Source: Carpediemonas membranifera BICM
Taxonomy: Eukaryota > Protista > Fornicata
Length of the DNA: 64,000 bases
NCBI GenBank assembly: GCA_019828565.1
Contig: JAHDYR010000064.1
Location: forward strand, 310,001 to 374,000
Reading direction: 5' to 3'
Each line of letters starts with the position of its first letter. The stretch's first letter is position 1. Below the pieces are notes generated by a model. The model ran no database searches. It was not told where the DNA came from and was given only the letters and a program-made list of their open reading frames with translations. A program made the translations under genes and the position numbers. Positions 30,900 to 48,898 of this stretch are shown here, piece by piece.

Positions 30900-32241
<1,342 letters not shown>

Positions 32242-32499
32242 TGTCTGTGTTAGGAGGGGAAATTTTCGCGGAAATGCAATGCAGGTGTGAAAACGATTAA
32301 CTTCACGACAATGTGCTCTTCTCATGCACATACACCGTATGTCTCGCTTTCCACTCACACGGCAAGCCCGTTAATTTGAACAAACATGTTGTATAGAACT
32401 AGCCCTCAAGGCGACTCAACGGCGACTTCGACACAATTTCGACACCGACCAAAATTACAGATCATGCCAGGCATGCTATTTACACGTGCTATACAACGC

Positions 32500-36451: not shown

Positions 36452-37791
36452 CTACTTCGCACCATACAAAAACAGGTTTGTAAGCGTAGCGATTGCTATG
36501 ATATTAGCCTGCGGGTGCCAGTCCAGATGCACCACCTTCTTGGCCGTGTTAACGTCACCCACCCAGCCTGTCTTGTTGCGGCGGGTAGCACCGAGTTTCT
36601 CCTCCTTCGTACGGCCACGGGACGCCTCAATACAGACACCACCCCGACCCATCCTATCGTAAATGTGGAAGTTGTTGTTGTAACTTCCGGTCAAAACGTG
36701 CGAGCCGTTTGGAGAGACAGCACACTCAAAACGATCAAATATAGCGTCCTGCTCGAACAACTGGGGCAAATGAGGCTTGAGGCTGTCGTGAATCGGGATG
36801 GTGTGCAGCGGCCGCGACTCCATGGCGACGTCCCACACCTTGAGCGAGAGAAAGTCCCGGGCAAAGATGTACTTGCCATCCGCTGAGAAAGTGAGGTCAG
36901 AGATGGATGAGGCGATCTCTTGGTGGTATGTGCGTTGGGACGAGGCTTGTTGGTCATTAAACGTCTTGCTGCCATAGTCGCACAGTGCCGAGGCGCGTAA
37001 GTCACAAAGACGGATCAGGTTTCGAGAAGTGCCGTATGCAAAAACAGCGCTGCTCTTTGGATGGTACGTTGCCGTGGTAATCACTTCCACAAGGTTGTCC
37101 AAACTGGGGGGCTTGATGTCGACGGCGTTGAACGTCGTTGCCGTTGTCTCTAAGTCCCAAATGTTCACGCGGAGATCATCCGCGGACAGGAAAGACGTCC
37201 CCTCGCTGCTGAGGGCAAGGCTGTTGATGTGGTAGTCGTGGACGCATTCGTACTGCCTCTTGGGGGACGCCCCGACCATTCCAGAGCCCCTCACGATACG
37301 GGGGATGCCTAGAGACCTTGGGGTGTCCTTAAGGAGGTTTCCAAACGACGGTGCCTTGTCCGCTTTGTTATGTACTTTCCATAGTTTGATCGTCTTGTCG
37401 TTGGTGGTCAGCATGAATCTCCCGCCGCACTGGTCATGACACCACTTGATCTTGTTGACTTGCTCGGGGATCTCGATGCTTCTGAGGTAGTCGAATTCGG
37501 GTTGATGAGACTCGAATTCTGTTACGAAGCGATATTCCACGTGGCGGCGGTGGTTCTTGTCCTTGGTCTCCACGCGTTCAAAGACAACGACACGGCCTCC
37601 ACGATCCCCAACAGCGAGAAAGTTCCCGTCCATATTGAATGCTACAGCAGAAATGATGTCTTCTGGATAAGAAGAAGGATAATGGGAATGGACAAACCGT
37701 CTTTCACGTCCTGGACAGCGGAGATGTCACCAAAGACCTGTGCAAAGCGCCAGGACGATCGATCGTCCACCTGTCGATGAGATCCATCCAT
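36452..37791 (-). CDS. PPP2R2: PP2A regulatory subunit B (B55/Cdc55) (exons 37791-37698 and 37662-36452)
   Basis: WRFAQVFG...DIISAVAF, GDRGGRVVVFE, SHQPEFDYLRSIEI, TNDKTIKLWK, SADDLRVNIW, DIKP. Confidence 0.96.
37663..37697 (-). other. Spliceosomal intron, 35 nt
   Basis: GTTTGTCC...CTTATCCAG; restores VKD-E-DIISAV. Confidence 0.9.
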
Positions 37792-37889
37792 GTTGCAAAC
37801 AAAGTTGCAAACACCTGCCATAAAATGCCTCTTGAATCTCCTCAATCGAATCTGATATCCTAATAGTGTGTTTAATCCACAAAATAAGA

Positions 37890-40800
37890 TCATATTTGCA
37901 TGACGTTGAAGTCGAACCTGCCGGCCCGACTTAGATCGATCTCCCCAACTTCTCCAGTCGCTGCGAAAGACCCAGAAGTGCCAAACAGACCAACACCAGT
38001 CTCAAACGACAGCCGCAGCGACGAGCTCATGATGACAGCATCCGGCTGGGGCCAGAGGTCGAGTGTGTGCTGCAGATCCCTCATGACAGGCTGGCCTGGG
38101 CGGACAAGTGAGGCCTGAGATACGATGGCATAGCGCAGGTTAGCCGCCTCACTGCCGCCGAGCTCCTGAATCGAGTCTGCCTGGAGTTGACGGATGAGGT
38201 CGCCTGAGAAGAGGACCACACGCTTGTCGAACACCCGGATCCGCATGGGGTTGGACCCGTTGACGACGGTCGGCACAGCTACAGAGACGGGGGCGAGGAT
38301 CTCATCGGGCATGGACGGGGCCGGACGGAAGCCTGGGAACGCGATGTTCTCCGCCATCATCACGACAAGCGTGGTGCGGCCGTCCCTGCATGCTGCTGAG
38401 AGCGGGGGATGAGCTTCGAGAAGTGTGGCCAGCCTGATCATGGCGTCGGAGAGGGCTGACCCGCCGTTGCACCAGTCCACCTCGTCCTTGCTAAACGGGC
38501 CACAGAGAACGAGCACGCGGGGCAGGTTCTCGCAGCACTCGCGGAGGAGGTGGGCGACCCGTTTCCTCTGGGCGGGTGTGTCGAGCAGGCAGTCGAAGGC
38601 GATCCTCAGGTTGGTGGGGTCGCCCTTCAACACGGCATCGTCACGAGCGGCATTGAGCACGTCAGCGTGGACGGCAGACAGCGGTGTCGGTTCGAACCAG
38701 GGCACGGGACCGATCGCTGTCCGACCAGCGTCCGAGTCGACGAGAGTGATGGTGTGTGGCCGCAGCACAGGCTTGCCCTGGTCGTCATACCCCACAGCGC
38801 CTTGTACCGTGACAAACATGCCGAGTGCGTACACTCCTGGCCCAAACTCAGTGTGCTCGTCGGGCTTGACGCCGATCCAGCCAGTGGTGTCCTCAAGACG
38901 GAAACCATCGTCCACTCTGGTGAGCATGCCAACAACCTTCCACAGCTTGTTCCGGTGGGAGTTGAGCTTCACGTCGTTGATCTTTGCCGCCCGCTCCTCG
39001 AGGTGAGTTTCTCTGCTTCTCACTGCCATTCGTGCCACCGTCATCCTCATGTTAGCGGAGTCAGCCATCTGCCCGTCGCGGGGGAGCCCAGGCTTGCCAG
39101 GGACAAAGCCGTCGCCCGAGAGTGCCGGGCGAACAATAGGAACTCGGCTGATGGGCACGGGCTCAACTATGGGCGTGGCGAGCTGGGGCCCGCTGTCCTG
39201 GTCGAGCAGGGCGATGAGCGCGCTGTTGCTGAGCCTGTGCTGGCCCTTAACGCCCTTCATCCGGTCCTTCGTGTCCTTGAGTAGACGCTTCACGCTGCTA
39301 ACTCCGCCGGGCTCGGCATACAAGGGAACAAGGATGTTGAGCGGGTTGTCGTTCGAGTCGATCGACATGCCGGCCCGCTGAACAAGCTTGGCGACGACCG
39401 GGCCGTTCTTCGCCTCCTCAGCCGTTCTAGCCCTCCATCTACCTGAGGCGTCGCGGTGGGTCTGGCGTGATTCGGCCTCTTCCTCCTCGACATAGCGGTG
39501 CTGGGCGATGTCGATGGCCGCTCCGAGCCTCTCCAAGCCGTAAAGCCCCGCGATCCTTCTCAGCGGCTCCACGTCAGCCTTGAACTGGTCGAGACCGTAT
39601 CGGGGAACGTATTTCCCGCCGCAGCCTGCGAGACATGAGTTGGGGCCAACTACGTGCATGCGGGGTGCGCCACAGTTGTCGCACACAGCGTCAGTGGAGT
39701 TGAACCGGGTGAAAGCAGCCGTGAGCTTCTCCATGAGCCTGGCCTCGAGCTTGTCCCTGCTGAACTGGTAGCCACAAGACTCCCTGGGGCAAACAGGCCC
39801 GCCTTGGGCGATAGACTTGGTGTCGCCGAGCAGGTCGCATGGGTACACCTGGTTGCACTTGTCGCAGAATAGCCCGCTGAGGATGAATGCCGTAGTTGGC
39901 CGCGGCCAGACCGAGATCATGTCTGCGCCGACTGGGGCGGCCCTTGTTGTGGTAGACAGGGCGGCCTGCTGGATGGCAGCGGTGAACTCGGCTCTGATTC
40001 TAGCCCCCTCGTCGGAATCCTGGGCCGCCATGAACCTGTCCAGCTCGACGACAAGCGCCCTGCTGCATTGTACGAACTCCGACTCCACAGAGTCGTGGGG
40101 TCGGGACCACGGGACACCGCTGGGCCACGCGATGGCTTCGGACCCGGCCGCAGTGAGCGAATGGATAGTGTTACGGGCCGCGTTGAGCTGAGAATAAAAG
40201 ATGGAGCGGTAACGACCCATGGCCTTGAGCAGACCCGCCTTGACCATGTCAGTGGTCACCAGGGCGTCGGGGTCTCGTGCCTCAGGGTCGTCCAGGTCAA
40301 GCGTGTCTGCGGCCTGGGTGGCCTGGCCCCCGCCTTGGAAACTACCCCGGACGGCCTCTACTAGTGCAGAGTCGAGCGGCCGGCCGTAGAGGTCGTGCCA
40401 CATAAAGTGGAGTGGCACGACGAGGGCGTTCATCGCGATGGCGCGCAAGTTCTGGGCGGTAGTCTGGGGGAAAACGTCGAGGAAGTCGAAGCCGACGATC
40501 GTGTGGGTCGGCTGAGCCTGTGCTGCGATCTCTTCCCCGCTGAGGGCGCCGATACCGATGTAGTTGAGCGAGTCGACGAACAGCAGGGCGTCATAAAGTG
40601 TGACTGATCGCGGCACGAGCTGAAGCAGCGGGAACGGAGAGTTCCTGCCGTTGACAGTGTCCACGAGCCGCCTCAGCACCGCCTGGGCCTTGTCGACCGA
40701 GAACATGCCTGTGTCCAGCACGACTCGGTTGAAGTCGAGGTGGATGACAGTCAACCCGTGGTCTTCGATGAGGGCCGCCAGCTGTCTGTGTACTCCGTTC

Positions 40801-43800
40801 ATGGCCTCTACCACTCTAGCGAGCAGGGCGGGGTCATAAAGCATGGCCTGGGGGTTTGAGATCCAGCGGTAGAGGTGCTCGATAAGGGCCGTGACGTACT
40901 GGGCGCCGACTCGGGCCGAGGGATCTGTGGCGCTGGCCGTGAGCTGGTCGACGCACGTCTTGATGAATAGCCGGAGGACCTGGAATGAGCGACGGGCAGG
41001 ATCGGCCATACCCGCGTCGTAGACCATGTCGGTGATGTTCTTCGCAGCGGCAGCCTCACCATAGAGCACTGCGTTGACACAGGCGAACCCAATGTCCACA
41101 GATGCAGTGATCGTGCGGTACAGCCCCTGCGTCGACAGGGACAGCGGGGCGACGGCGTCGACCGGCGCGGGGTGCGGGCCGACGTCTGGGGCGGTGGTGG
41201 ATGAGCACCAGGAGACTAGGCCGTTTGCCTGGAGGGTGCGGGAGTAGAGCGTGTCGGCGAGGAAGGACATGACGTCGGTTGGGAGGTTGCACAGGGGGAG
41301 GCCTGCGAGACGGGCCATGCCCTCCATGGCCTCGATCACGCCGCTGTTGCTGGCCATCGTCTCTGCCACGCGCACACCCATGGCGCTCGCCCATCCAAAG
41401 GCGTCTGCCCAGTCCTCCTCCTCCCAGGCGCTGTCCACGGGCATGAACAGCGCCGGCCACTGGGGCGCAGTGCCGTCGGTGGTGTCGGTCACTCCGAACA
41501 GGGCCTCCATGACTGTCTTCCGGTCGTGGGGACCCATGACCAACAGCACGGGCACGCGTGGTCGGCTGGATGGGTCGGCGCTGTTGGCGTCGTTTGATTT
41601 GGCAATGGTGTCACCGACGGTGGCGAGCAGGGTCTCGACGCGACCCCTGATGAATCTAGCAGTGCCACGCTCGGACGTCGCGGCAGTGACGGTGGCGTGG
41701 CGTTTTGCTGCCCGGAGAGGGTTCTTGAACGACTCGTAGAGCCCTTCCCCGGCCTCAACATGCTCGCTGATAGCATCCCTCGCGGCCTGTGCGCTGTTTG
41801 TGCGACTCATTACAAAGTGGAGCCGTTCCCCTACAAACGCGGGGGAGAACACAGTGGCGATAATTCGCTGGCCGTGTTGAACGTAGTGTACAATCACAGG
41901 CTCAAGATCAACCTCACCCAGCCCGTCCGCCCGAACACTGTGCAGGTCGTCAAGCAGTATAGTCCTCCCGGCACTGGTCCCCGAGTAGCGGCAGACCCCG
42001 CCGACCTGGGTGATTGTCCGGGAAAGGGGGTCAATGCCGAGCTCGAAGACACCAGAGACCTCGGGGTGCTCCCTCAGAGACTGGATGCGGGGATTGTTGA
42101 CGAACTCAGCCTCGGCCATCTGAACTCTGACGACCTTAGACTGCACATTGTGGCGTGGGAGCACGCGCTCGACAATCTCGAGCTTGGTCGCCGAGCTGTT
42201 TGCTCCGAGGACAGCGGCGACAACAGATAGTGGGGCTGCGACGTAAAACACCCTGGGAACCTCGACGTCCTGGTACGACAGCGCGTGCGTGCCCGCCATG
42301 ACGACGGCGAGGGTGACCACACCGGGGGCCCTCACCTTAGCCTGGAGGACTGTCCACTGAGCATGCCGCTTCGACGCCTGCTTGTGTGCGAACTCGCGGA
42401 GGGTTCCCTTGGAAACCGTCAGCCTGCCCTGCTTCCTATCCACACGCAGGGCCCGCCACTGGGCCCGCTTGTGTCGAATCCACTCGGGGAAGTGGGTGTC
42501 CCGACGCCATGGGCGGCCCGAGGGGTCGAGCTTGAGGGCCTCGACGTCCTCCTTTGTTGGGTTGAGTGCCCGCTGTCTGGCAAATTCGGCCTTCTTCGCG
42601 AGCTGGGCCTTAGAAAGAGGCTTCTGGCCACCTGACGAGAGGGGCATGTTGGTGTAAGAGTTGTTGGAGGCAGAGACAAATGTCCCGGGTGGTCGGGTGA
42701 TCGAGCCGGACTTGCCCTTGAGGAAGTCGACGATCTTGCGCTGGTGGCGGTTGGCCTCGATCTCGCGCTGCTGCTTGATGAGCCAATCAGGGAGCGTGAC
42801 TTCCGGAGTTGGGTTGGGCACGCCTTGCTTGATGGCGGGGATCGTCACAATCTTCAGGATCTGCTTCGAGATACGCTGGATATAGTAATCCCAGTCAACG
42901 ATATTCCTGATATCACACGCCTCACCCTGGATGCTGGCCTTCGTCCATCTTAGCAGCCACTTCTCCTGCGCCTTGAGTGGGAGCTGCCAGAGGAGAGTGG
43001 GGATGGCCCTAGAGGTGGTCGACGCCTCGCCGTCCGGTGCCCATCTGCTGATGATATACTTGCATGTAACGCCGGTCTGATTAACGATATCTGGGTCCAT
43101 GATCTCTGCGAGTCGGGTGACTGTGGTGATGGCGACGGACTTGCGGCCTCCGTAGTCAGCGACGGGCTTGCTCATCGTCGTGCTCTCCTCAATGAGGGCG
43201 AGGAGCTCTGTATCCGGGATCGAGCAGCCCTTGGTCATCAGAACGTTCAGGATCGTGCGGCAGATGACGCCTGCCTCGGCGTAGGCGGCGGCGACGTTGC
43301 TGCCCTTGAGGAAGGCAGGGAAGATGAGGGTCTGGAACGCCTTGACCAGCTGCAACTCGCCGCGTCGCTTGAGCTCGAAACCCTTGAGTTCAGCGAGGGT
43401 GTTATCCTCGTTGTACACGGCATACCGCTTCTTGATGAGCTTGTCAGGACCCAGCTCGGATGCTGGGAGGATCATACTCTTGTACGGCCCATCGACCTCG
43501 AAGTATATCGAGCACTCCTTGTGTGTCTTAAACTGCGTGTTCATGGGGTTGAGCGATGTCATGTACTGGTGGTTGGTGTAGTTCGCGTACACGTCAGCGT
43601 TGAGCATGATAGCAGGATACGACACGCGAACCTTCTTCTCCTTCCCGTAGCGGTCAGTGAGCTTCATGGTCTCGTATTGGGGGAACTCCTTTGGCAGTGC
43701 GACCCAGATTCCGTCCGTGTCGAGCTCCAGGGGCAGACCGATCCTCTCACACAGGGCACGAGCCTGCTTGATGATGTTTGCTCCAGTGTGTGTGACTACT

Positions 43801-46195
43801 CCGGCCATTTCCATGCTGTACCAGCGGGACCCGGCGGCCATGACGTAGCCGTAGAAGGAGTTGAGGATGCACTTATGGGCGAGCTGCAGGCTGTCCATGA
43901 GGACCACCATCTGCTTGGCCTGTTCCATAGCTGCTGCGTCGCCTGAGCCTTCGAGCTCGCGCATCTTGCCCTGCCAAACCTTGAGGTTCGTCTTAAACTC
44001 ATAGCGCTTGTCCCTAAACTGGCGCACAGTGTCAACGTAAAACGGGTTGTCCCTCTGGCAGATGAACGCCTCTCGCTTCCGTTCGATCTTCTCGTGGATC
44101 TCGCCTCTCGAGCTCTTGGCAGCGACCTTAACCTGCTCTTTGAAAGCATCCTCCATGTCACGTGCGGATCCAGTACGGGTCTGCTCGACGAACACCTTCT
44201 GTTGGAGTAGCGCGGCTGCGTCCAGCTTGAACACCAAGCCGCGCCACACCCAGTTCATCGCCTTCTGGCACTGCGCCTTGTCTCTGTAAAAATCGCACTG
44301 TGCGCAGTCGTGGTCGGTAACGACAGAGCATGGCTGAAGACGGTTCGTGAGGATGATGTTGGGGTACATCGCGGCGATGTCGAGGTGATAGATGAGGGGT
44401 TTGGCTGTGAACCTGCGTCGGGGCTGTGCGGCGGTCACTGTGCCATCTGGCTTGACACTGAGGCCGCCAATCGCAGCGAGACTCTCTCTGATGTGCGCCA
44501 GGGCATCTCTGAAGCCCTGCTGCTTCACTAGCTCCTCGGGGTCGACGTCAATATTCTCTTCAGCGACAACCGCGTGAATCAGATCAGCCTGCAACTTCCC
44601 ACAGAGGAACTGGTACGCCGAGGTGTCAATGTCGAACTCAACTGGGACGTCAGACCTGTAGATACCCGACCTCAGCGCCTCTACCCGCCCGCCGATGTAC
44701 GTCTCCTTATCTATGAGTCTGCCGTCGCTGTGGTACTTGATGACTTGGGCTTTCTGCTTGTCTGGGGCGACCACCTCTGCACGCTTGGCTTGGACCATCA
44801 ATAGGGCCTCACACAGACCACCAGAGCCCTTTCTGAGGACTTGGTCAGGACCGAGCGGGATCAGCGTACATAGACTGAATATAAATGGTTCAACGTACTT
44901 GACGTAAAGATAGTACGTCGCCACGGCATCCGAGACGGAATACTGGGCGTACACGAATGGGTTCGAGTGTGCAAGCGGCGTCATCTCCTCTGGATCGAGC
45001 TCATGCGGGTCATACCGCAGCTTCTCACGGCACACGGCCTTGAGGTTCTGGGACCCTTGGGGTAGGTACGAATCGCGCTGGACCCACTTGAAACAGTCGA
45101 GGTGGGGTGTCAACTCGCCGTAGTATTCGCCCTGTGAGGTTCCCTTCTCTGAGGCACGGCGGTTGTCGTCAGTGAACGCGTTTCTGATGGATGTCTCGCG
45201 CTCGAGCCAGCCGGGGGCGTCGGGCTCGGTCTCGAGGTCGTAGACGGCGGCTCTGCGCTCAATGTACGGCCAATCGAAGAAATCGCCGTTGAACGAGACG
45301 TACACGTGCGGCTTGTACGCCTTCATGTGCAGGAAGAACGTCTCGAGCAGCGCCTTCTCCGTGGGGACCTCCTGCACCGCGAACACACCGGGGAAGTCCT
45401 TGCTGGGCGTGAACTCGAGCGTCTGGGGGATCTGGCGGGCAGGGTCGGGGTTCTTGGGCACGGCGTTGTTGTTAACGATGAGGTGAGCGTTGTTCTTGCC
45501 CATCATGTAGGAGATCATCTGAATCTCATCATCGCGGGCATCAGGGAAGCGGAGAGGCTTCTTGGCCACCTCGATATCGAACGCCACTGTCCTGAGTGCG
45601 CACTTATCGAGCACGTTGGGCAGACACTCGAGCTTTTGCACGATGCTGTCGCTGTCCGAGGCAGCAGACCCGGGTTCGAGCGTGACGTTGTACCACTGGC
45701 CCACCCGGATCTCCTGGGCGATGAAAGACCGCATGAGGTACGGTACATCATGCTCCCTGAGCTCTGCGATGGTTGAGTCAGCTCCCTGGCGCCGCATCTG
45801 TTGGCGGATCTCGCGAGCTTTCGCCTCGAGGCTTGCCTGGGTGGGGAACTCGACCTTGATGTAGTCTTGGTACGGGGAGGTGATGTGGTTGGCGACATCA
45901 GTGTCTATGAGGCGTATGTCGGTCGTTGTGAGGCCCTCGTGGGCGAGAGACGAGGTAGCCGCAGCACGGTCGCTGTTTTGGCGTACCTTGAGGAGGAAAT
46001 ACGGTCTAAAGCGCTGGAGGGCGACGACAGTGTTGCCGTCTGCCTTGACGAACAGGAACTTGAGGGCGGATACGTTTCCTGATGCTTCGGCGGGTGCTGG
46101 AGCCTCTGCCTGGGTAAACACGTGGAAAAAGTTGTACAAACTTCGACGGCGTTAAGTAGCCATCCCCTGAAGCAGTGATCCGTCTCAACCACCAT
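37890..46195 (-). CDS. POLE: DNA polymerase epsilon catalytic subunit fused C-terminally to Dpb2/POLE2 (exons 46195-46142 and 46109-37890; about 2757 aa)
   Basis: Exo AFDIE, FNGDFFDWPYI; pol motifs YHLDIAAMYPNII, QLAHKCILNSFYGY, ELDTDGIW; CysA/CysB fingers; last ~500 aa carry Dpb2 OB-fold and PDE-like motifs. Confidence 0.95.
46110..46141 (-). other. Spliceosomal intron, 32 nt
   Basis: GTTTGTAC...TTTACCCAG; joins exon MVVETDHCFRGWLLNAVE (Pol2 GWLxN motif) in frame to the main ORF. Confidence 0.88.
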
Positions 46196-46393
46196 AGCGC
46201 GCTATTCACCTCTGACATAAACTGCACCTTTGCTTGACGGGCCAGGGATGCTGGTAGACATTCATATCGGCTATACCGACACTTTCCAGGGCTCCAGTAG
46301 CGAAAAATCAAGAACGGGCACTTTAGTGTCAAATTGACGGAATCTGCCGAATCCGAGCACTCCGCCGCCCCATCACCGAGAACTAAGGACATA

Positions 46394-48898
46394 ATGCTTA
46401 CACAACTGGCTTCCGAATATACACAGCTGGCCAAGTTGGATAAGAAGCTTCAGAAGTCGATTTCGGCAGCGCTTGCTCTGTTCCCGGAAGAATACACTGA
46501 CCTAGACTATGCTGGGATCATTAGAGAGCACCAAGGCGTTCTTCTTCAGCCCTGTCTTAATGCGATGGCCAAACAGACTCCCAAAGCGATGTTTACAGGC
46601 ATGCTGCTGGTCTCTCGCCTTCTCGGCTCCCTAAACCTGACCGAACCCCACCTTGGCGACATCGCCATGCGTGTTTTCGAGCTCTCTCGCGAGAAAGAGC
46701 TCCATTCCGATGACAAGATCCGATTGATGCTCATCAAGCTCTCCCAGTTCCTCTGCAACGCCGCTCCCACCTTGGATGAATCGGGTGTGACCCTTTCGAC
46801 TGCCATTTCAGCGCTGGTCAACCTCAAGATCTCCCAGGACAGCCTCATGCCTGTGGGAACGTCAAGTATCGTTACAGACGCCGTCAACGGCCTCTTCAGC
46901 GTCCTCGACGGCCTCCTATCAGTCGACGACCAGCGTGCTGCAGGCTTCCTTGCGCACACAGCCGACCTGTTCACCGACATGACCAGCATGGCTGCCGGGT
47001 CGCCCCTCATGTGGCTAAACTGCCGATCGCTGACTCCACAGGACGCCCTAGGGACTGTTACGGCGACTGTTAATCAGTGGGGCGCTATTATACTCGGTCA
47101 CGAAGGGTTTACGAAGGCCAGGGCTGCGTTATCAGCTCTGTGTGGGGCGCTGATCGACCGAACGAACGCCGCGAGCAACCCTCTCCTCGACATCTTCGCA
47201 AACTTTCCCCTGCTTGTCAAGTGGCATCACCAAGCAGCCACTAGAGGCTGGTCGACCTGTGGCGAGGCCGCTTTCGTTATGGAACCGCTCATTGGTCTCC
47301 TTTACTCGACCTCGCCCCAGATTCACACGATTGTACTGTCCGCACTGCTGAAGGGCATCGGACAGCACCCTGGAGCTGACTCAACCACCACAATATTGTC
47401 ACACTGTCTCTCTCTCGTGTCAGTCGAGTCGCCTAGAGTCGACCTTACATACAAGCTGGCGACTTTTGTCATCAACAGCAGCCAGACCACGCTCACCCTC
47501 GACCAGATCGCCCTTTCTGCTTCAGTAATCGCCCAACTCGCCCCCGGTGTGGAGCTAGCCGAGGCTCTCTCCTGCGTCGAGCGCCTGTGGGCTCTGTCAG
47601 ACCGTTCAGCCGAAGTGGCCGCCGACCCTGACGCAGACCACAGCGCGGTCCAGTCGGTGCTCACTCAGATCATATGCCGCCTGGCGGACGTGGCGCTCGA
47701 CTCAAGGATCCATGTCCGAACGTCTGCCGTGAAGACACTGTTTGGTGTCGTCAGCACGCATGGAGACATCCTCGAGGAGGCTGCGTCTGCAAGGGCGGTG
47801 CAGGAGATCATGAGAGTGGCCGACGACCTCCTAGACCGCCTCGCAGTGGCTGTGGCGGACCAGTCGGGGACCCCGGACTTCGTGGACGTGACCCAGTCGA
47901 GCCCACTCGCCTCTGTCGCCTCCACACTCAGTGTCCTCCTCGCTGAGCTGACAAGTGCTGTTATCCAGCGTGGTGTGGTCCTCGCCGCCGAAGACAGGAG
48001 CCGTGTCATCCGAATGGCCGCGCTGATGTTCCAGGAGAACTCGGCCCAGCTCAGAGATAAGGCGGATAGGGCGTTCTCCCTCTCAGTGGTCGAGTCCATC
48101 GTCAGATTCATCGCTTTCTACCGGGACTGGTCCCTCTGGGTCGTGTTTGCTGAGTCGATCGACTTCAAAACGATGACCCGAAAGACTGCAGTCGCGTGGG
48201 TCGCCCAGGTTTTCCAGTGTACCCCGGCGGATTTCTCTGCCGTCCTTGACGTAATTCGCATACTCACAAGAACACCGTCACCCAACGCTGAAGCGGCAGT
48301 GCAGACAGCTGTTCCACTGCTCTCTTCAGCGGCGTTTGAGCGATACTACGACAGTTTGGCAGCCCATGAACGAGTCAACGCTGACAAGGTTCGTCCGGTG
48401 CATTTTATGACAACACCGGGGCTGGAGGAGGCGGCGCTATACATGATGGACGTCCTTCCTGCGGATGAGAACTGCACATACAGTAGACTTGCACCTTTGT
48501 TGGCGGATTTAGTAGATTCATGCGATCCCCGGCTGTATATTGCGATCCAGGAGAAGATTTGCATATCTGGACTCGGCGGTCTGCCCGAGCCCATGCTCCG
48601 AGTCCTCGCCACGGCTGTTGAGCGGGCCGCCGAACACCCTCTGCTCGATTCGCTCATTAGCTTCCTCGACGGAGTCATTCAACTCGAGAATTTGATCGGA
48701 TCAAATCTCGGCCTCGATATTGCGAGTGCCGACCTTGTCCGGGTTGAGCAGGCGGTCGACTTCATCCGCCGTCTGTCACCGACCACAGCTCCAGGACAGC
48801 GGTCGGCGTCCTTTGCTGAGCAAATGGCTCAAGTGGTGAGAGGTGCCGAGGAACTCGCACTCGTGCCCGTATGCGGCGTGTTATCGACCCTGCGGTGA
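46394..48898 (+). CDS. MON2-like (Arf-GEF-related) HEAT-repeat protein, shortened
   Basis: N-terminal DCB-like LLQPCLNAM..., DSRIHVRTSAVKTLFGVVSTHG resembles the MON2 C-terminal HDS region; all-helical composition. Confidence 0.65.
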   Translation: MLTQLASEYTQLAKLDKKLQKSISAALALFPEEYTDLDYAGIIREHQGVLLQPCLNAMAKQTPKAMFTGMLLVSRLLGSLNLTEPHLGDIAMRVFELSREKELHSDDKIRLMLIKLSQFLCNAAPTLDESGVTLSTAISALVNLKISQDSLMPVGTSSIVTDAVNGLFSVLDGLLSVDDQRAAGFLAHTADLFTDMTSMAAGSPLMWLNCRSLTPQDALGTVTATVNQWGAIILGHEGFTKARAALSALCGALIDRTNAASNPLLDIFANFPLLVKWHHQAATRGWSTCGEAAFVMEPLIGLLYSTSPQIHTIVLSALLKGIGQHPGADSTTTILSHCLSLVSVESPRVDLTYKLATFVINSSQTTLTLDQIALSASVIAQLAPGVELAEALSCVERLWALSDRSAEVAADPDADHSAVQSVLTQIICRLADVALDSRIHVRTSAVKTLFGVVSTHGDILEEAASARAVQEIMRVADDLLDRLAVAVADQSGTPDFVDVTQSSPLASVASTLSVLLAELTSAVIQRGVVLAAEDRSRVIRMAALMFQENSAQLRDKADRAFSLSVVESIVRFIAFYRDWSLWVVFAESIDFKTMTRKTAVAWVAQVFQCTPADFSAVLDVIRILTRTPSPNAEAAVQTAVPLLSSAAFERYYDSLAAHERVNADKVRPVHFMTTPGLEEAALYMMDVLPADENCTYSRLAPLLADLVDSCDPRLYIAIQEKICISGLGGLPEPMLRVLATAVERAAEHPLLDSLISFLDGVIQLENLIGSNLGLDIASADLVRVEQAVDFIRRLSPTTAPGQRSASFAEQMAQVVRGAEELALVPVCGVLSTLR

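Follow-up and report, generated by a model that had tools for sequence, protein, structure and literature searches.

The window analysed here, 64,000 nt of contig JAHDYR010000064.1 of the protist Carpediemonas membranifera BICM (positions 310,001 to 374,000 of the forward strand), carries on its minus strand a gene with one intron (46195-37890) in which Pol2, the catalytic subunit of DNA polymerase epsilon, continues in frame into the B subunit Dpb2 (POLE2). We are highly confident that this fusion is real at the gene level, and we consider it likely that the natural in-frame fusion gives one polypeptide with both essential Pol epsilon subunits, which would work like ordinary Pol epsilon. The fusion is already in print and is therefore not new: in the genome paper of Salas-Leiva et al. 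(2021) the legend of Figure 1 notes in a footnote, without analysis, that the catalytic subunit of Pol epsilon is fused to subunit 2 (PMC8516963). There is strong reason to infer that this footnote refers to J8273_7798 / KAG9390447.1, the protein described here. What we add is the anatomy of the fusion, a test for an artefact, and its pairing with a probable fusion of GINS subunits.

An open reading frame (ORF) on the minus strand, free of stop codons from 46139 to 37890, spans both Pol2 and Dpb2. It is preceded by a short exon of 18 codons (46142..46195, ATG at 46195), whose GWLLN motif aligns to the N-terminus of human POLE1, and by a GT-AG intron of 32 nt (46110..46141) that agrees with the predicted NCBI gene model. 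With the intron taken into account, exon 1 and the long frame translate to 2,757 aa that correspond exactly to KAG9390447.1, named in the database DNA polymerase epsilon catalytic subunit A of C. membranifera. The frame ends with a TGA at 37892-37890. The initial annotation, made from the DNA sequence of the window, had noticed that the ORF continues past the CysB finger into B-subunit sequence, and the single frame identical to KAG9390447.1 bears this out.

Judged by domain matches, motifs and alignment, the N-terminal half is a complete Pol2/POLE1 with family B exonuclease and polymerase domains, an inactive second fold, CysA and CysB. Residues 1-1147 match human POLE1 with an E value of 1.7e-278 (phmmer), and the catalytic half (42723..46109), with exonuclease, polymerase motifs, CysX cysteines and thumb, matches PF03104, PF00136 and PF22634. 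The exonuclease motif FDIE at 195 and the polymerase motifs DIAAMYP at 595 and ELDTDG at 813 are all intact. The inactive C-terminal polymerase fold (DUF1744 region, 40551..41420) was assigned by PF08490 (E 1.2e-40). The CysA and CysB fingers proposed in the initial annotation were located by motifs and alignment at C2100-C2130 (39774..39866) and at C2161, C2164, C2177 and C2181 (39621..39683), the latter with a weak match to PF22912 (E 0.004). All eight cysteines align with those of Pol2 homologues, the terminal helices come after them, and the CysB spacing is C-x2-C-x12-C-x3-C here versus x11/x1 in most aligned homologues. The alignment column of residue ~2224 is where unfused Pol2 proteins of plants, animals and Plasmodium terminate, which indicates that the Pol2 half (aa 1-2224) is complete.

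The approximately 503 aa that follow the linker matched PF04042 above the cut-off (E 9e-11), and human POLE2 was the sole sequence match of the C-terminal part in the PDB (phmmer, E 5e-7). A search of 1.84 billion representative sequences gave 75 matches; most of them cover the B subunit, and those checked that carry a name are POLE2. A POLE2 profile from matches that the query had selected, with the query itself left out, scored 140 bits here compared to 24-25 bits for the two other B subunits of the genome; the POLE2 alignment (A1) includes one false member, the FtsH-like P0140. No matches were obtained with the C-terminal piece alone in a word-indexed search, and the ESM Atlas returned no usable match. 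The AlphaFold model of the Dpb2 half, with a predicted local distance difference test (pLDDT) score of 83.7, adopts the POLE2 fold and superposes on 5vbn_A with a Z score of 39.9 and a root mean square deviation of 2.2 Å over 395 residues, at only ~20% identity to the human and yeast B subunits. It aligns with the whole human POLE2 chain (residues 1-519) of 7pfo_A. The B subunits POLA2, POLD2 and archaeal PolD DP1 have the OB plus phosphoesterase fold in common with it and score clearly lower (Z 18-25; 24.8 for POLA2, ~21 for POLD2). Since the model was built from the POLE2 alignment, it leans to POLE2 and is not independent. By profile scores and predicted fold taken together, the core (37890..39194) resembles POLE2 more than it does POLA2 or POLD2; its OB fold begins near aa 2400 and its inactive phosphoesterase-like domain near aa 2515. 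Every motif that the initial annotation quoted is present.

Residues 2255-2323 (39195..39401), between the linker and the core, are probably the Dpb2 four-helix N-domain, which in model species is the GINS-docking module. Position, length and helix pattern fit this domain, and the alignment-guided AlphaFold model reaches a pLDDT of about 87-95 over the helices. PF12213 (Dpoe2NT) and custom profiles gave no match to this region, 40 of 200 shuffled sequences scored as high in the profile test, and a model from the single sequence had a pLDDT of 61 and no fold match. The helical N-domain suggested in the initial annotation is thus plausible by position and by the alignment-guided model, while independent confirmation from the sequence was not obtained.

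We searched the genome assembly (24.24 Mb, 69 contigs) for another POLE2. Neither PF04042 and PF12213 nor the POLE2 alignment detected a second copy, and one PF12213 match (L004) is unrelated to POLE2. The two other B subunits of the genome are stand-alone proteins, POLD2 (E 1e-29) and a POLA2-like protein with a weak match. By these searches the fused copy is the sole POLE2 of the genome, and neither Pol2 nor Dpb2 exists besides it as a stand-alone copy.

The two halves are joined by a charged linker of 30 aa (aa 2225-2254, 39402..39491), delimited by the alignment of Pol2 tails. It has 64% GC compared to 34-52% in nine intergenic stretches, and no AT-rich intron candidate was found in it. 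No stop codon interrupts the frame in the linker, and no in-frame Met occurs before M2266. The codon score of the linker (0.20 versus 0.24 ± 0.12 for the ORF) was reached by 0 of 78 intergenic windows, but it has no power against a one-base artefact of the assembly, since frame 0 would then be coding on both sides. Contigs from public sequencing runs, probably of RNA, match 1,595 nt over both halves with 0 differences and 0 gaps; among them no read or contig bridges 39072-39664.

This gap leaves some room for an assembly artefact, in which tandem, slightly overlapping POL2 and DPB2 genes appear fused because the assembly lacks a single base within the linker. In that case a TAG near codon 2241 would terminate Pol2, and an out-of-frame ATG at codon 2224 would be the start codon of Dpb2. 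Both the ATG (frame +1) and the TAG (frame +2) exist, with one CCC run at 39460 between them, but the same combination of ATG and stop also occurs in 19-21% of 299 ordinary 30-codon windows of the ORF and therefore carries no weight. The assembly is not free of indels, as seen from the beta-tubulin gene of the window (minus strand, ~30900-32253), where an extra C in a C-run at 31320-31330 shifts the frame and is most likely an assembly error. Genes for subunits of one complex can also adjoin unfused in this genome, as shown by the head-to-head genes for Mcm6 and Mcm2 on contig C26. Against this, the artefact needs an error within ~50 nt of an otherwise intact frame of 8.2 kb, overlapping coding regions on the same strand, and a promoter inside the CysB coding DNA with 61% GC, in a region where genes are flanked by spacers of 34-52% GC. 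Considering also the 1,595 nt without a difference, we regard an artefact as very unlikely and favor a genuine in-frame fusion.

A genuine fused gene could still give rise to two chains, if a single mRNA encoded a polyprotein that is cleaved within the charged linker. Disorder is predicted for the first part of this linker (pLDDT 41-50), which is also rich in Arg and Glu and may therefore be accessible to a protease. However, inspection of the linker revealed no 2A-type skipping motif, and cutting would be unnecessary, since an uncut fusion works in Schizosaccharomyces pombe (PMC3418317). We consider a cut product highly improbable, and the uncut chain remains our preferred reading.

In that yeast, the engineered Cdc20-Dpb2 fusion at the native locus allowed deletion of dpb2 without a growth defect (Handa et al. 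2012, PMC3418317), and from a mechanistic view the Carpediemonas fusion is therefore unsurprising. Both have the same order of subunits; the S. pombe fusion is a laboratory construct in a species with the full initiation system (PMC3418317), whereas the Carpediemonas fusion is natural, with a native 30-aa linker and a very divergent Dpb2. Compared to human POLE1-POLE2 and yeast Pol2-Dpb2 (5VBN, 7PFO, 6HV8), the domain order within each half is the same, but there the subunits are separate genes and chains. Supplementary Data 2 of the genome paper lists J8273_7798 as PolE and leaves PolE2 blank in both Carpediemonas species, Spironucleus and Trepomonas, and it lists a separate PolE2 in Kipferlia, Giardia, Monocercomonoides and Trichomonas (PMC8516963). 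The blank entry of C. frisia in this table is compatible with a fusion and no proof of it. The PolE entry is the same protein as the one analysed here, and the genome paper, in its legend and table, is silent on boundaries, linker, structure and mechanism (PMC8516963). Our literature search found no later paper on this fusion.

We also looked for a second Pol2-Dpb2 fusion. None was found among length-matched candidates, 120 listed Pol2 homologues (mostly plants) and the 75 representative matches, in searches with low sensitivity for a query this divergent. The long matches P0165, P0007 and P0006 are not Pol2-Dpb2 fusions, and a metagenome locus (L040) was a bacterial chance match. P0165 (KAF8057260.1, Scenedesmus) begins with DPB2, has no Pol2 domains in its 1,600-aa model and is probably a merged gene model.

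For GINS, the docking partner of the Dpb2 N-domain in model species, the genome paper lists only Psf3 in C. membranifera, with three subunits published as lost (PMC8516963). A minus-strand frame of 861 codons at G000:C35:11377-13959 (L031:1377-3959), located via the locus tag of a neighboring histone H3 gene, is a candidate for a single-chain GINS. In searches made with the long exon alone, aa 421-554 matched Psf2 (E 2.9e-6) and aa 633-751 weakly matched Sld5 (E 0.059). By eye, the start of the frame resembles Psf3, and a helix near aa 225-246 is Psf1-like. The Pfam GINS families gave no match in the genome search, and another locus (L005) was rejected as a GINS gene. From these matches the C35 ORF is probably a single-chain, multi-subunit GINS, and the docking partner of Dpb2 would then probably not be lost; the pattern is one of consolidation by fusion. 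Genes for Cdc45 and Mcm2-7 are present as well. The link to a reduced replisome drawn in the initial annotation is weakened by these findings.

Two MCM genes are arranged head-to-head at G000:C26:1299982-1303989 and match the consecutive tags Mcm6 J8273_5530 and Mcm2 J8273_5531; as these are separate genes, an Mcm6-Mcm2 fusion was rejected. A second, equal-scoring copy of one of them lies at C18:207511-208164. Besides the main CDC45 gene on C1, weak matches to the CDC45 family occur at G000:C27:30579-30971 (L007, E 7e-4) and, 7 kb from the MCM pair, at G000:C26:1310513-1310830 (L008, E 0.047).

For yeast it was shown that the MCM ATPase tier is clamped between C-Pol2 and the core of Dpb2, that the Dpb2 C-terminus touches C-Pol2, and that the Dpb2 N-domain, attached by a flexible linker, binds to Psf1 at the C-terminal domain of the latter (PMC6265327, PMC9022971, PMC3526264). 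By analogy to the yeast and human structures, the N-terminal half of Pol2 would synthesize and proofread the leading strand, and the CysB region and the OB/phosphoesterase core of Dpb2 would fold together in cis, the counterpart of their trans association in other species. The MCM ATPase tier would be gripped between C-Pol2 and the core of Dpb2, and the N-domain, held at both ends by the 30-aa linker to Pol2 and a short linker to the core, would reach Psf1 of GINS. The C-terminus of Dpb2 would stay free, with its N-terminus tied to Pol2 by 30 residues, which we estimate to span up to ~100 Å if extended. The expected outcome is ordinary Pol epsilon activity with a fixed 1:1 ratio of the subunits. 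Most likely the two genes first came to lie in tandem and Pol2 then lost its stop codon. The fusion may have become fixed almost or entirely without cost, once the lineage had separated from Kipferlia and the diplomonads, which keep separate genes.

Several points weigh against this picture. Besides the unbridged junction, the dependence of the AlphaFold model on the POLE2 alignment, the failure of N-domain profiles and the lack of a second fusion in our searches, Pfam did not detect a Psf1 B-domain in the GINS ORF, and the single uncut chain is a prediction from the gene.

The fusion could also be adaptive, with the Pol2-Dpb2 fusion and a single-chain GINS reducing the number of parts for the CMG-Pol epsilon helicase and compensating the loss of ORC, Cdc6 and Cdt1, which are reported absent. 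This proposal concerns why the fusion exists and not whether it does. It would fit two fusions (the Pol2-Dpb2 gene and the GINS ORF) in one module whose members are recruited together at origin firing, while the B subunits of Pol alpha and delta and the MCM genes are unfused. However, ORC acts at a different step, the loading of MCM, and growth was unchanged by the yeast fusion (PMC3418317). We therefore find adaptation unlikely as the reason. It is equally doubtful that the helicase-activating module was condensed into two chains, Pol2-Dpb2 and GINS, for initiation free of ORC, Cdc6 and Cdt1, with the reported losses of GINS subunits and POLE2 being fusions.

Upstream of the Pol epsilon gene and head-to-head with it lies a plus-strand gene (46334-48898) with a weak Mon2_C match (E 0.003). 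It starts less than 200 nt from the Pol epsilon ATG, and the two genes possibly share a promoter. Directly downstream, 36452-37816 on the minus strand encodes a WD40 protein resembling the B55 subunit of PP2A; a run contig shows a 35-nt intron (37663-37697) in this gene, which places its start upstream of the ATG at 37633.

Within the reach of our searches, no natural Pol2-Dpb2 fusion other than this one was found; it occurs in a lineage whose members are the only eukaryotes reported to lack ORC and Cdc6. The fusion alone leaves the accepted view of Pol epsilon action unchanged. Evolution would here have done what was engineered in fission yeast, indicating that the N-terminus of Dpb2 need not be free. 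In divergent protists, fused subunits can be counted as lost in tables of gene presence and absence. A two-chain module of Pol epsilon and GINS, if true, would offer a compact means to reconstitute helicase assembly.

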